From assembly GCA_020891255.1 (NCBI GenBank), contig BQFW01000018.1, positions 1-60,988 of the forward strand: a DNA stretch of 60,988 nucleotides. Reading direction: 5' to 3'. Both the position numbers and the translations under genes were made by a program. The notes under the pieces were generated by a model. That model ran no database searches, had not been told where the DNA came from, and saw only the letters and a list, made by a program, of their open reading frames with translations. Shown here one piece after another: positions 27,265 through 41,743 of this stretch. Within the stretch, counting starts at the first letter, position 1; each line of letters starts with the position of its first letter. Source of the stretch: Entomortierella parvispora E1425 (taxonomy: Eukaryota > Fungi > Mortierellomycota).

Positions 27265-30200
27265 TTTTTTGGCCTTCATTGTGAGGATCCACTGTGGTGA
27301 GGTCGTGCCCATGAAAAGAGATTGAAAAAAAAAAAAAAGACGAATTACCTCATGACGTCCCAAGAGAGGCGTGTCATACAGCTCGAATTCTTCGTCATAG
27401 GTGAACCGAGGGTTCTCTGGGCGCCTGGACGATGGGCGGTATTGCTGAAACTCAGATGAGGGCAAGGTGCAGGTTGGGAGCGGGAATCATACTCCCAGTC
27501 TCTGGCGTAAGAGGCCTCCCGCTGTTGGATAGTCCTGACCAGAGTGGGTGCTGAACCATCATCGGGTGTCTCAGTCACCTGGGCAAGAGAAGGTATGATG
27601 GAGGGTGAGCCACCTCTTCTCAGTTGTGCAAGTATAGCATATAGCAACAACAATGAAAAAGAAGAAAAACAAAAGAGGAAAATAAAAGCTGGAAATACGA
27701 ACCGTCTGTCCAAAAGCTCGCGCGACCGGCAAGTTCTCGAACGAAGGTGTGCAGGGAATGATCCTGGCTGGACCTTCGAGAACAAACTTGTGGGTGAACC
27801 CACGGCCCTGAACCTCATATTCGTTAATCATATAGTGTCCGCAGAAATCATTGACATCTCCCGCCTTGATTTTGCCGCTGATCATGTCCCGCACGAGCTG
27901 CTGATGGGGGCTCGGAGGAATTTTGGCGCGATCCACACAAGACAAAATTATGTTGGCCTTGGGGCTGGCCCCCTGGAAGGGCATCTTCACAAAGATGATA
28001 ATGTCCGACGTGGGGCTGTTGTCCTTCCTCACAGGCGAATCAGTGATGACGAGCATGGTAGAGTTGATGTAGATGGAGTGGTGTGGAGAAAGAGAGCGAT
28101 AGTGGCAAAAAAAAAAAAAAAAAAGGCTTAAAAAGGCTTAAAAAGGCGTCCACTGGCTGTTTTGCCAGGAGGGTCTCGAGTACTTGCCGCTTTGGATGCT
28201 CCACGGGAAGGTTGTGATTGTGCCATGGCTGTGTAGTCGAGTTCGAGGTCTAAGGGAGGTCAAAGGATGCCTTAGATGCGTGGTTGGAGAGAGATAGGAC
28301 AGAGAAAAGTGTCGCGTCCAGGTCGCGTCCAGTCCGCGTCCGAGCGGGGTTTTTGTTCATCCTAGGCAGCGCGTCTTACCTTGAAGTAAAAGCGATTATG
28401 AATGCAGCTCTGAGTGCAAGTGTTTGTTTTTTGGCGCAAAGAGTGGTGGTTGTAGCTGCGTTGGTGCGAGAAAGGATGGAGGAACAGGCTGAACAGAGCC
28501 AAAAAAGAGAACCGAAAAAACTGGACCTTCTGACGTCACCGAATTATTTTTCGCAAAAATAAAGTCACTCAAGAAGCTCAATGTTGGCCCAATGCGATGC
28601 TCCTCACCTTTGCCCTGTTCTTTGTATGGTCGACCATTGTACCCTTCTATCGTTCCTTTTGACTCGAGCACAACATGACAGAATAAAGAAGGTACACAAG
28701 TGGTCATTGAGCCAATCATATGGTTCAGTTGGGGGATTACTCGTGTTGTCATTAATGGATGGTCCATGCCTTTGCTCAATGCCTGTGGACATTTTCTAAA
28801 AGAGCTGCAGGCGTCGACGACAATGAGGACGTATCAGAGTCGCCGTCATTGCAGGGACGATTGTCACAAAGTCGTAGCAGTGGCCATGGTCTTTTCGGCT
28901 CGAGTTCGTCTGCATCTGCATCGCGCCAGCGGTGAGTGGGTTGTTTCATGTGGAGTGACTTTGGGAAATGCTGCCGTGAACTCAACAACCGACTCCATTG
29001 CCTTTATGCATATAGACATCCTAGCAGGGGCGACTCTAGTATGGAGCAGCTGGAAAGGCTTGGATCAGCACTGTCCATTGAGGACCCCAGAGAGTCTCCA
29101 GCGCCCTCGACGGGCTTGATGTCGGGCACCCAGGAAGCAGAGGACGATGGCAATGACCATGGCAGCGACAATGAGGAGAACGCATCAGCCCTGGCTGGAC
29201 AAGGACCGTCGCCGCCGCCACAACAACGACGCCAACGCCGACGACGGGCACTTCCAGCCCAGCCACCGCCTGTCCTCCATCCGATGACATACAGGAGCAG
29301 CCTAGAGAATGCTCAACGTCCCTCTGAATATTTTTGCTGCGTGTGCTGCCGGATCCTTTTTCGGGAAGAGACGGTGCCCCTGATTGTGGCAGAAGCACTG
29401 CAAGAAGCACTGCAAGTGGACCCTGCCTTTGAACTCGACGCTGTACAATGGCCCTGTTTGCAATACGTTGTCGAACCAACAAGGAAAAGAAACAACCTCA
29501 CGGCGTGCAAGTCTCACCAGCATTTGACCAACAAATCATTGGAATGGGTCTTTTTTTTTTTTTTTTTTTTTTTAAAAAAAACCCCCCTTTCCCTCATATT
29601 AACAGTCTGCATGTTTCAATCTAGATGGCCTTTGTCAATGATAACTGAGGGAATCCACTGAGACGGGTGGATCAGCATGGCAACGTTGTCTTGGAAAACG
29701 TTCCAGTGGCGCTCAGAGGACTGTACTGGAGCGATTTTCGATACCTGTGTCGGGTCATGACCTTTAGTTCGTTGATGCCCTCCGTCCCTGGTCAGTCCCT
29801 GTCCTTTCCATGCGTCAGTGGACATGTTTCGATCTACCGATCAAGGTTATCGCTCAACTCCAATGCAGGCATGACCTCGTTCGTTCAGGATGCGACAGTA
29901 CCTCCCGCCGACCGGAGCCGCATCATCAGGGCGTGGAACTGGCTCCGTGTCCACAATCCAGAGTGGCTGAATTGTCCGCCAGTACCAGCCATGCCGGAGC
30001 AAATTGGGGAGGGCCTTGTGAACATTGGGAATGGGCAGGCCGAGCATATGGGCCAACTGAATTTCCCAGGAGTGTTTTGTGCAGGCATGGACCCAGGTCC
30101 TAGGGCCGCGGACGCCCAGATGGAGAACTTGGTCGTAGGCGTGAATGTAGAGGATGACACAGGAGTGACCTTCAAGAGCCCCACGCTGATGCTCAATCTC

Positions 30201-30514
30201 TTTCCCGATCTCTTTCCGTATGGGCATGGTGACTTCAAGTTGGAGCATTACAAGACAAACCTGCGACAGGCACCAGAGGCTGTGCAGGGAGAAGACATTC
30301 CAATGGAACCAGAAGGGGAGCAAGAAGTCGTAGACGCTGGCGCAGAGGAGCTTTCAGAATTTGAACCATTTGACATTGAACCATTTGACGTTGACAGTCT
30401 TGGCCTGGATCCAGACCAGGGCGGGGACGTCAGCATCGACAGCGACCCTGACGGAGATGACGACGACGACGACGACCCTGGCGACGATGAAGACGAAGAT
30501 TCTGATGTGGATAT
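24424..30514 (+). repeat. ~6.1-kb segmental duplication, copy 2 (begins with IGS-derived DNA to 25314)
   Basis: Colinear with 11805-17939. Confidence 0.9.
26092..28060 (-). pseudogene. Copy 2 of the possible OB-like/AT-hook gene
   Basis: KRGQGRPRG..TKKGKEKKDDNQG* at 26092-26310; upstream exon 27571-28056 is nearly identical to copy 1. Confidence 0.4.
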
Positions 30515-31847
30515 GGACGTGGAGGATGAAGAAAATGAAGCGACCAGGGAAAGCACAGCAATTCAGTATCAGGGTGTTCTGCGTCGCCTTCAACCGGAAT
30601 GGCACCGTGTTCTTTCATACATTCTCTCGAAATGGGCTCCAAAGGTGATTGGCAAGGTGAAGGACTATGCCTGGGTCACAAGTTTCAGCAAAGAGAAGCG
30701 CCTCATGTCCATTTTGTCCTCTGGTCCGAGCGAACTGTTGACGAGTTGATAACCCAAAACAACTCTGGAGACCCGACAAAGGTTGTTGTTTCCTGCAAGC
30801 GACGCACTGGAGACCCGATCGTGGATGGACTCGTCGCTCTACACCAGATGCACCGCCACACGCCCTATTACTGCATGAAACAGTCCAAAAAATGTCACTT
30901 TGGATTCCCCATGGTTGTCTCGGACAAGACCGTTTTTGATGAGGACACTGGAAAAGTGGTCTTGGAGCGAGGTCAGGAGGACATGTACGTGAATGCCTAC
31001 AACCCCGATATCCTGAAGATCTGTCGCTCCAACATCGGTATTCAATTGAACAAGGGATCTCGGTCGATTGATTGTCTGCACAAGTACACGTCACAGGTAT
31101 CCAGTCTTTCGGAGGGCGTCATTCAAGAAGTACCAGTGGACCTGCAACAGCCGCCGCCTCAAAACAGACAGAGACTGCGCGACTAGTATGGGAAGTCGGG
31201 TAAGTTTTTTCTTTTCTTTTATTTTCTCAAGGAAACTGAAAAAGTGGAGATTCACCCCAGTCCCCAGTGTCTCTTTGCCCATCTAGTATTCTACTATAAC
31301 CGTCTGTGCATGCCCGAAATATGCATGGATCTGCTGGAATTATCACTGTCGCTGTCGTCCGGTCGTGTACTTGCCCACCCACGACAAAGACCAGCGAAGG
31401 AATCTATTAAGAACGGCGGCAGACTTGGCAGCAGAGGCGGACGAGTCTGACAACATCTTTCTGGATGGGATTTGGGTCAAGTACCTGAACCTGCCCGCAG
31501 GTACGGCTTTCAACGACCTGACCTACGAAGAGTTTTATGAACAATACCAGCAATATTTTGGACCGAAAGCGACCGCCTTGCCACCCTATGACGCAGAAGA
31601 CTATGCACAGTTGATCCTATTCAAGGACAAGACCAGTCGTCGCAAGTGCAAGGCAGTCGGGGGTGCGATCACAAGAGTCCGGCCCATCCCCATGTCCTCT
31701 ATGGAGGAGGCCTGCAATCACCTGTTGATGTTGAAGGTGCCCATGAGGGTTGACTGTGATGAGTGGCTGGAGGTCGCTGGGTGCGAGTCCGTGTTTGAGC
31801 TTACGGTCGCTTGGCTGTGCAAGTCTTGGAGCAGAGCCCTTCGATGA
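29041..31847 (+). pseudogene. Helitron2/Helentron-type RepHel remnant including the HUH Rep domain; helicase missing
   Basis: WLRVHNP, LFPDLFPYGHG, GKVKDYAWV / FQQREAPHVHFVLW (HUH motif), HQMHRHT..C...CHFGFP, VNAYNP..CRSNIGIQ, CLHKY (YxxKY with the first Tyr lost), DNIF..KY...LTYEEF, LLMLKVPMR. Premature TGA near 29646 and frameshifts. Confidence 0.85.
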
Positions 31848-31899
31848 CAACTGATCCAACATCGTTACCTGAAGGTGAATTTGCGGTTTACGTCGGGTG

Positions 31900-40963: not shown

Positions 40964-41029
40964 AAGAGCCGACATCGAAGGATCAAAAAGCAACGTCGCT
41001 ATGAACGCTTGGCTGCCACAAGCCAGTTA
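40964..41029 (-). rRNA. 66-bp 28S fragment ending at the common target site
   Basis: AAGAGCCGACATCG...AGCCAGTTA identical to the intact 28S. Confidence 0.95.
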
Positions 41030-41479
41030 CTGCTACCTACTGGGACTTTTCTACGTCGATAAGGACTTTTTGGGTAGTTTTCGATTTTTAGCTCTATGGT
41101 TTTCCATCACATTTGGATGAAATTTGGCATGGAGATAGCCCTCGTCAAGGGCTACCCGCCGGTACCAATTTCGTCATAGGTTCCCAAGTTGGATCTTGCG
41201 TAAAAAAAGAAATTTCAATTCAAACCTTAATTTTTGTCCGTTTTTACTTGGCGATTTTTAGAGCCTCCCAGAGGTCATTGATGGCGCCCTCCCGGGTACC
41301 ATTCGAAAGCCCTCGATGATGGGTAAAGGGGCGTATTTTTTTTGAAATGATCGGACGTCTGTGGATGGAGATACCGCGCACTAAAGCATTTTAGAGGGCC
41401 CCGTGCTGGAGCTATGTAAAAATGGCAGTCACAAGTAGCTCTTGCTGGAGGTCCTCTTAACAGTGGGCTCGAGTTTGCA

Positions 41480-41743
41480 ATGGACCGGATCATCCGCGAA
41501 CAGGCCCAAGGTGGACATTCCCGTTGTCAGTTTCCTGTAATGTTGTCCTACGCCCTCACGATTCACCGAGCTCAAAGTCTAACACTCGACAAGGTGTTAG
41601 TTAACTTGAGCGATATCTTTTGCACAGGACTAGCCTATGTCGCGATGAGCCGTGTACGCACTATGAAAGACTTGTACGTTTACAACATTCCAGAAAACCT
41701 TGAATCAATCTTTCCCCACGACGGCGTTCGACTTCATCTATAG
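41480..41743 (+). pseudogene. PIF1-family (Helitron) helicase C-terminal fragment
   Basis: RCQFPVMLSYALTIHRAQSLTLDKV..GLAYVAMSRVR are the SF1B/PIF1 motifs V-VI. Confidence 0.9.

Follow-up and report, generated by a model that had tools for sequence, protein, structure and literature searches.

The stretch of DNA analyzed here (the window, 60,988 bp) is a complete contig of the fungus Entomortierella parvispora, its record ending at 60988, and it combines ribosomal RNA (rRNA) genes with fragments of RepHel, the gene for the Rep and helicase protein of Helitron transposons. A preliminary description of the window had tied such fragments to breaks in the 28S gene and proposed a rolling-circle HUH enzyme as the site-specific integrase. 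Using Rfam models, we identified a single full ribosomal DNA (rDNA) unit on the minus strand (28S at 48594-52111, 5.8S, and 18S at 52675-54473), two plus-strand 5S genes in the rDNA spacer and three extra 28S 3' fragments, to which sensitive BLASTN of the window added two 28S stubs of 70 nt. We conclude that the window is a decayed border of the E. parvispora rDNA array. The 28S sequences are as follows, with the broken ones labeled J1 to J5.

48594-52111, minus strand: intact 28S gene, in which the common site is unbroken (between 49168 and 49169)
17951-18020, minus strand: 28S stub of 70 nt, terminating at the common site (J1)
19283-19438, minus strand: 28S 3' fragment, Rfam model positions 2826-2984, terminating at the common site (J2)
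40961-41031, minus strand: 28S stub of 70 nt, terminating at the common site (J3)
42612-43272, minus strand: 3' external spacer and last 575 nt of 28S, terminating at the common site (J4)
58581-59241, minus strand: 3' spacer and 28S 3' fragment, broken at the common site (J5), from a unit that otherwise looks normal, with an 18S gene and a spacer carrying two 5S genes

All five 28S 3' fragments end at one nucleotide (18020, 19438, 41031, 43272 and 59241), and the part of the 28S that is kept is always the 3' side (from longest to shortest, 660, 660, 156, 70 and 70 nt). On the plus strand, the 28S end at the junctions reads …GCCACAAGCCAGTTAT|, where the intact gene goes on with CCCTGTGGTAAC (49168|49169). 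The common site lies on the antisense strand immediately past …CCAGTTAT; across it the rRNA sense strand reads …CCACAGGG|ATAACTGG, which belongs to the peptidyl-transferase region and is approximately 575 nt from the 28S 3' end. To our knowledge, this position is not among the described sites of R elements. The idea that the right flanks are diverged 28S sequence was ruled out by alignment z values between -1 and +1 relative to shuffles.

The target, TTAT|C, fits the insertion rule of Helitron2 elements, which is T|T or T|C. Helitron2 in general uses a T(T/C) target (PMC13085455), and FoHeli1/2 of Fusarium oxysporum insert between TNAT and T, with 5' ends that start TCAG and carry a GAA-loop hairpin (PMC5148889). 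Two of the window flanks begin like these 5' ends: the J2 flank at 19439 begins TCAGCTG and continues with a hairpin of -8.6 kcal/mol, and the insert that follows J4, which we call E2, begins TCCTCCC-GAA-GGGA.

RepHel remnants beside the breakpoint

RepHel remnants lie behind the common breakpoint, antisense to the rRNA. We refer to the family of the window's Rep-bearing copies as HelA. The window contains the following inserts and remnants, with L001 and L002 denoting related loci introduced below.

28810-31801, plus strand: HelA copy I, a decayed RepHel with N-terminal region and HUH Rep, cut before the helicase (from translation and homology)
16259-17940, plus strand: HelA copy II, limited to the N-terminal part and contained in the segmental duplication 11844-17921 = 24426-30466
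26080-28800, no strand assigned: upstream region U, 65-82% identical to L001 and L002
41032-41456, plus strand: left-end module of 425 bp, 97.6% identical to 59242-59666
41480-41743, plus strand: C-terminal end (87 aa) of a Helitron-type superfamily 1B (PIF1-like) helicase (from BLASTP and a hidden Markov model)
43273-47800, plus strand: insert E2, left end TCCTCCC-GAA-GGGA, then a 28S-like 11-mer
59242-59666, plus strand: second 425-bp left-end module, with unrelated sequence from there to the contig end

Translation of 28936-32200 gives a single RepHel reading frame that hops among all three frames. It contains, in order, a Cys-rich N-terminal part, WNWLRVHNPEW, LFPDLFPYG, an acidic run and, at approximately 30700, the HUH motif APHVHFVLW, which marks it as a Helitron Rep. 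After the tyrosine motif, IDCLHKYTSQ, comes the segment that normally precedes the helicase, ending near 31801-31847. A home-made RepHel hidden Markov model (HMM) matches 30683-31069 (E 1e-27). An exhaustive HMMER search with the 195-aa Rep open reading frame (ORF) returned 284 matches, many of 1,100-2,100 aa, with protein P0001 as the best (77% identity, E 3e-77); the E. parvispora protein EMPS_11637 also matches the Rep region. P0001 and its long relatives carry the Pfam domain Helitron_like_N, and the nearest full-length relatives combine DUF6570, Helitron_like_N and PIF1, many with an OTU domain and some with an AP-endonuclease (APE) domain, which is at most an indirect hint of a Helitron2 grouping. 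Both the N-terminus plus HUH Rep that the preliminary description had placed at 29041-31847 and its conserved RepHel blocks are thus present.

Of the 82 window ORFs listed with a length of 100 aa or more, our Pfam scans covered 57. The Helitron_like_N model is unmatched by the window's own ORFs because 482 bp that are kept in the related loci L001-L004 are deleted at 30575/30576. The same scans, confined to window ORFs, gave no match to Exo_endo_phos, the AP-endonuclease domain that Helentrons in the strict sense carry in their transposase. Copy I also has a stop near 29650 and a frameshift near 30690. Its YxxxY tyrosine motif, IDCLHKYTSQ, corresponds to IDYLHKYMSK in L001, L003 and L004, so that, judged by these alignments, the HelA family has both catalytic tyrosines and copy I has lost the first (Tyr to Cys). 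The RepHel copies in the window are dead, as had been claimed from the stop, frameshift and missing tyrosine; the 482-bp deletion adds to these lesions. Sampled 31-mers of 29041-31847 were present only in the assembly's own sample, with next to none in nine other public runs under the same species label (X3-X11).

Copy II, previously described as a second N-terminus fused straight onto 28S, ends 10 bp ahead of the 70-nt stub of J1. The physical association stands, and copy II sits in a segmental duplication; it is therefore not an independent insertion, and one event was copied. Directly past the stub ending at 18020 there is a CT-rich tandem repeat with a period of approximately 34 bp (18039-18298), and CT-rich sequence of a similar kind trails the RepHel stop in L001 and L004. 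Region U, upstream of copy I, holds a decayed minus-strand gene and accompanies HelA in three loci.

The helicase fragment at 41480-41743 matches the extreme C-terminus of full-length RepHel proteins, which holds the last helicase motifs (BLASTP, 44-53% identity, E ~1e-14), and it matches our RepHel HMM with E 3e-20. It begins 449 bp past the 28S junction at 41031 and 10 kb from the window Rep. These data agree with the earlier claim of a PIF1 C-terminus approximately 450 bp behind a junction and behind the same left end as at 59241, the shared end being the 425-bp module at 97.6% identity. Exact database look-ups of ORFs 60092-60604 and 41480-41743 found no record.

We took four related loci (L001-L004) from assembly GCA_020891255.1. 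L001 and L004 adjoin each other on a 2.1-Mb contig, and each carries a decayed RepHel of the same family as window HelA in which Rep and helicase are contiguous. The 28S 3' fragments at L001:20151 and L004:6694 end at the common nucleotide, beside the HelA copies. L001 also has spacer pieces, units of a repeat that we call REP200 and two further 28S pieces, upstream of a 2.7-kb U region that precedes HelA as in the window. L002 sits amid spacer fragments on a 125-kb contig. Copy starts vary: L003 starts at TCTGACGTCACC and L004 approximately 20 nt later, and L001, L002 and the window reach 2.7 kb further. An attempt to define the HelA 5' terminus from six copies was abandoned because the boundaries differ between copies.

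The rDNA-derived pieces (28S, REP200, spacer) occupy L001 2842-2899, 4328-4831, 17440-18176 and 20151-20331 and L004 6694-7256. They lie 80-122 kb into the 2.1-Mb contig, around the two HelA copies and a JmjC gene, and the region may be a relic rDNA site. A second recurring 28S breakpoint, at approximately 49093-49101 of the window's intact gene, forms the left edge of three stubs (window 17951 and 40961; L001 2848, 4831), and the two complementary pieces in L001 stand in permuted order.

The preliminary description had suggested that an autonomous copy might lie beyond 60988, which is where the contig record ends. Searches for a full-length RepHel from E. parvispora by single protein, representative library and mixed alignment found only fragments of 324-415 aa.

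The same break in soil metagenomes

We searched metagenome contigs for junction DNA with a pattern that accepted A, G or T as the base next to TTAT. The pattern returned 45 contigs, approximately 26 of which are true breaks at the common nucleotide and approximately 19 plain 28S variants. Of the 26 breaks, 21 have T as their first insert base and 14 start with TC; this bias indicates a defined element end rather than random capture. For many of the junctions a contig end is 95-126 nt away, which is to be expected when assembly passes from unique DNA into a repeat.

Three inserts are complete, with 28S halves on both sides. They are listed with the right end that stands before CCCTG.

L019: insert of 670 bp, right end TAT
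L022: insert of 1,860 bp, right end CAGTTAT
L047: insert of 4,993 bp, right end AGTTAT

RepHel-type sequences recur in the flanks. L047 has a Helitron-type helicase C-terminal end (E 2e-13) approximately 500 bp ahead of its right end, antisense to the rRNA. L007 carries a HelA-family N-terminus approximately 3 kb behind the junction and facing the same way, a 462-aa ORF whose identity to the window RepHel N-terminus is 39-41% (E 1e-36). The first ~450 bp of L007 are common to L030 and L045, whose content then diverges, and the window's 425-bp module is likewise common to two inserts with different content. L009 has a helicase C-terminal end and then, on the same strand, a canonical Helitron 3' end (GC-rich hairpin and CTAG, at 800-890), which meets antisense 28S sequence at a point 36 nt short of the site. 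Stubs of 28S, 36-71 nt long and ending at the site, occur in L009, L015, L036 and L029. In a partial survey, in which the ORFs of approximately 14 flanks were scanned, coding matches were of Helitron type in five contigs, compared with one long interspersed nuclear element (LINE) and one Mutator-like element (MULE); no long-terminal-repeat (LTR) elements were seen in the flank ORFs scanned. A protein-based scan of metagenomes for close HelA relatives found none.

Left-end hairpins are present in some flanks only (L026, the 19439 flank and L022). When left ends were aligned to the next 32 nt of 28S, 10 of 32 scored at or above the 95th percentile of controls. The first ~27 nt past the junction mimic the following 28S at approximately 70% identity in L009, L016, L030, L014, L042 and window 43273-43312, and the 28S on the opposite side of those junctions is 97-100% identical. 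L009 and L016 read TTAT, TAT and then 28S-like sequence, resembling an empty site with a 3-nt footprint. The nucleotide likeness between window and metagenome left ends was dismissed, as it consists only of CT-rich low complexity.

A proposed Helitron2-like origin and its alternatives

The common breakpoint, the antisense RepHel remnants behind it, the recurrence in other loci and organisms and the two-sided inserts are observations that any explanation has to accommodate. We consider the chances about even that Helitron2-like rolling-circle transposons, together with non-autonomous and cargo-bearing derivatives, invaded 28S genes at one fixed position. A Helitron2-like lineage is the best single explanation because the target fits, the insert starts resemble those of FoHeli elements and RepHel remnants recur in the same orientation.

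Under this explanation, the HUH nuclease of Rep would nick single-stranded antisense 28S DNA 3' of TTAT, a TNAT-type motif, and the 5' end of the element would be joined at that nick. The 3-7 nt of redundancy at the right ends (TAT, AGTTAT or CAGTTAT) would be the element's own 3' terminal motif rather than duplicated target, and no target duplication would be needed if the 3' ends of the complete inserts are read as TAT or AGTTAT. Read-through from spacer copies downstream of 28S could stop at the same nick site and so yield units with a 28S 3' piece or a stub of 36-75 nt at their end, for which 41032-43272, 43273-49168 and copy II with its stub are candidates. Later unequal exchange, the 6-kb duplication and other insertions would have produced the present mosaic. 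The proposal of the HUH enzyme as site-specific integrase is partly supported: the link between RepHel and the breakpoint recurs in L001, L004, L007 and L047 and the target fits, while Rep is a candidate, on sequence grounds, for the enzyme that makes the 28S cut, and the inserts are mixed.

Several known systems share parts of this arrangement. FoHeli1/2 (PMC5148889) likewise are found in a fungal host, have a RepHel without an endonuclease domain, insert 3' of a TNAT motif without target duplication, have 5' ends of T(C/A) with a short GAA-loop hairpin (compare TCAGCTG… and TCCTCCC-GAA-GGGA in the window) and produce deletion derivatives with only the termini in common. Unlike the window inserts, FoHeli elements are dispersed with no tie to one gene and have asymmetric terminal inverted repeats and an ATTTT end, neither of which was found here; the 3' host base here is C, in contrast to FoHeli, and the right ends finish in (AG)TTAT. 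As with R1, R2 and other rDNA-specific non-LTR retrotransposons, one exact 28S position is used across species, broken units gather in part of the array, and one junction is exact and the other variable. Unlike R1 and R2, the window inserts have no reverse transcriptase or endonuclease in the ORFs scanned, and the remnants are of RepHel antisense to the rRNA.

Dada and the piggyBac element Pokey of Daphnia are, similarly, DNA transposons specialized for multicopy RNA genes. Dada makes duplications of 6-7 bp and shows one-sided target flanks and tandem copies, with a subterminal motif that is present in the target too, at the same distance (PMC3706591). Both differ from the elements here in having a DDE transposase and fixed-length target duplications, where the remnants in the window are of an HUH Rep and a helicase. 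A final likeness is to bacterial HUH transposons. In IS91/ISCR and IS200/IS605 the joining of one end invariably takes place 3' of a short specific sequence, and read-through beyond the terminator carries flanking DNA. These elements are prokaryotic and have different Rep families, so the likeness may be taken as one of working principle only.

A number of results weigh against a Helitron2-like origin. The target motif is one of them, as TNAT sites are everywhere in a genome; the motif alone therefore cannot explain the use of a single site. A small stem-loop in the 28S antisense strand is unexceptional relative to shuffles, hairpins are not enriched at left ends overall (mean -2.6 compared with -2.8 kcal/mol in controls), and comparison of the first 60-100 nt with the tails of the three complete inserts and the window units revealed no asymmetric terminal inverted repeats. 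The junction flanks are mutually unrelated in sequence, except for the two with the common 425-bp module. L003 is a HelA fragment between ordinary genes with no rDNA near, and no intact RepHel of the HelA family was found in protein collections. The window helicase C-terminal end is only 48% identical to the L001 copy, compared with 75-80% for the Rep parts, and may therefore derive from another Helitron subfamily than HelA.

Insert content is also mixed, comprising an APE and reverse transcriptase LINE, a MULE transposase, an expressed spliced gene and reversed helicases. The LINE is at L035 2819-6750 on the minus strand, in rRNA sense orientation and 2.7 kb from the junction. L014 carries a MULE/SWIM transposase antisense to the rRNA at 701-3432 on the plus strand, behind the common junction, and the flank in L040 contains an isochorismatase gene. 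The helicases of L034 and L027 face the opposite way, reading toward the junction. In the window, E2 contains no RepHel; it has an exact 28S 11-mer, TAACTTTTCTG, and a host-like plus-strand gene at 45090-47764. Contigs from run X1 skip 46049-46159, 46444-46528, 46696-46785 and 47069-47179, all with GT/GC..AG ends, which indicates that E2 holds a transcribed five-exon gene. In its last exon (47121-47723) there is a resemblance to Mucoromycota families that have a PD-(D/E)XK-like nuclease fold, and E2 DNA depth in run X2 is flat at ~158, as for single-copy DNA.

Such diversity could mean that the site acts generally as a hotspot or safe haven: another agent or breakage would open the 28S, the interrupted units would turn into dead DNA that accumulates any transposon, and Helitrons would be passengers. 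The LINE, the MULE, the isochorismatase gene, E2 and the Crinkler-type genes of the window are what this idea predicts, as are the unrelated flanks and the canonical Helitron end that L009 has 36 nt off the site. Even so, Helitron-type coding remnants are the commonest recognizable content, with no LTR elements seen, L007 and the window/L001 arrangement agree in family, orientation and a spacing of ~3 kb, and the first insert bases show the strong T/TC bias; we regard a hotspot as unlikely. If instead a site-specific non-LTR retrotransposon of the R-element kind owned the site, the fixed junction would be its 3' junction, the variable redundancy of 3-7 nt would be ordinary variation of its 5' junction, and short inserts would be 5'-truncated. 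Target-primed reverse transcription, too, is expected to leave one fixed junction and, opposite it, a short redundancy that varies; inserts of 0.67, 1.9 and 5 kb show this pattern (TAT, AGTTAT, CAGTTAT), and the ORFs of the L035 LINE run in the rRNA sense orientation. Yet that LINE ends 2.7 kb from the junction, neither the scanned window ORFs nor the other scanned flank ORFs encode a reverse transcriptase or endonuclease, the insert 3' ends are unrelated in sequence, and L007, L047 and the window have their coding remnants antisense to the rRNA, which leaves such an owner improbable.

Dada-type elements would likewise account for a redundancy of 6-7 nt together with a subterminal motif that resembles the target, and a Dada-like or MULE-like DDE transposon could be the site specialist, with target duplications of 6-7 bp, one end always in the target gene and such a motif. 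Two of the three complete inserts have the right redundancy, many left ends mimic the next ~27 nt of 28S, and L014 supplies a MULE/SWIM transposase antisense to the rRNA. That gene, however, is in one contig only, neither the window nor the other loci contain a relative of it, the redundancy in L019 is 3 nt, and no subterminal inverted repeat was found; we consider a DDE specialist highly improbable. Lastly, a spacer Helitron might once have captured a 3' piece of 28S that then served as its 3' end, with all junctions descending from that event and no insertion into 28S. Tandem units of body, REP200, spacer and 28S 3' piece (41032-43272 and 43273-49168), the stubs adjoining HelA copies away from the array and the helicase C-terminal end of L009, followed by a 28S-like piece within 350 nt, are suggestive of capture. 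But the flanks differ at every junction, the junction is found in many organisms, three metagenome inserts lie between both 28S halves and the 59241 junction is in an otherwise normal rDNA unit. The two-sided inserts and the normal unit at 58581-59241 largely refute a single old capture as the sole explanation, and we give it hardly any credence in that role; as read-through it may survive as a side process.

A stronger form of the Helitron2-like origin is more tentative, and we hold it to be possible rather than probable: a Helitron2-type lineage may be dedicated to one peptidyl-transferase position of 28S in Mortierella-like fungi and other soil eukaryotes, with Rep reading the antisense TTAT, and the small stem-loop ahead of it, as a mimic of the element's own end, and read-through copies could restore an intact 28S upon insertion. 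In the literature searched (PMC3706591; PMC3849761), non-LTR retrotransposons are the only elements described as strictly specific for rRNA genes, apart from the DNA transposons Pokey and Dada. Full-text searches of the literature on Helitrons or Helentrons with rDNA or 28S returned no Helitron described as specific for either. If true, this lineage would be the first rDNA-specific Helitron and a new class among rDNA-dwelling transposons. It would mean that long-target specificity can arise in the evolution of a eukaryotic HUH nuclease. It would provide a natural single-strand-nicking tool aimed at a safe harbor, and a 30-40-nt oligonucleotide of known sequence would be a directly testable substrate for Rep nicking. 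Whichever enzyme cuts, the recurrent break in approximately 26 metagenome contigs is a previously unlisted 28S insertion hotspot.

Repeats and other genes of the window

The Pfam scans revealed one domain unrelated to Helitrons, the N-terminal domain of Crinkler effectors. It is encoded by an ORF at 33535-33957 on the minus strand (E 1e-14), and a second window ORF matches the same model. No Fanzor, reverse transcriptase or DDE gene was found among the ORFs scanned.

The 6-kb segmental duplication that contains copy II (11844-17921 = 24426-30466) is 95-97% identical between its halves and comprises spacer sequence, REP200 units, the U region and the RepHel N-terminus. In two units the 28S 3' spacer is directly followed by REP200, a repeat family of approximately 200-250 bp whose other copies are dispersed through the contig. 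Its place beside the 28S is represented by one block, and the copies are listed below it.

41884-42611, no strand assigned: REP200 repeats and spacer; the same block stands before the intact 28S at 47814-48508
REP200 copies in the first part of the window: 4374-4680, 12831-13285, 20408-20605, 25424-25874, 32069-32247
REP200 copies in the remainder: 36707-38160, 41884-42408, 44311-44982, 47814-48277

REP200 may be native spacer or part of an element, and it is present in L001 and L002 too.

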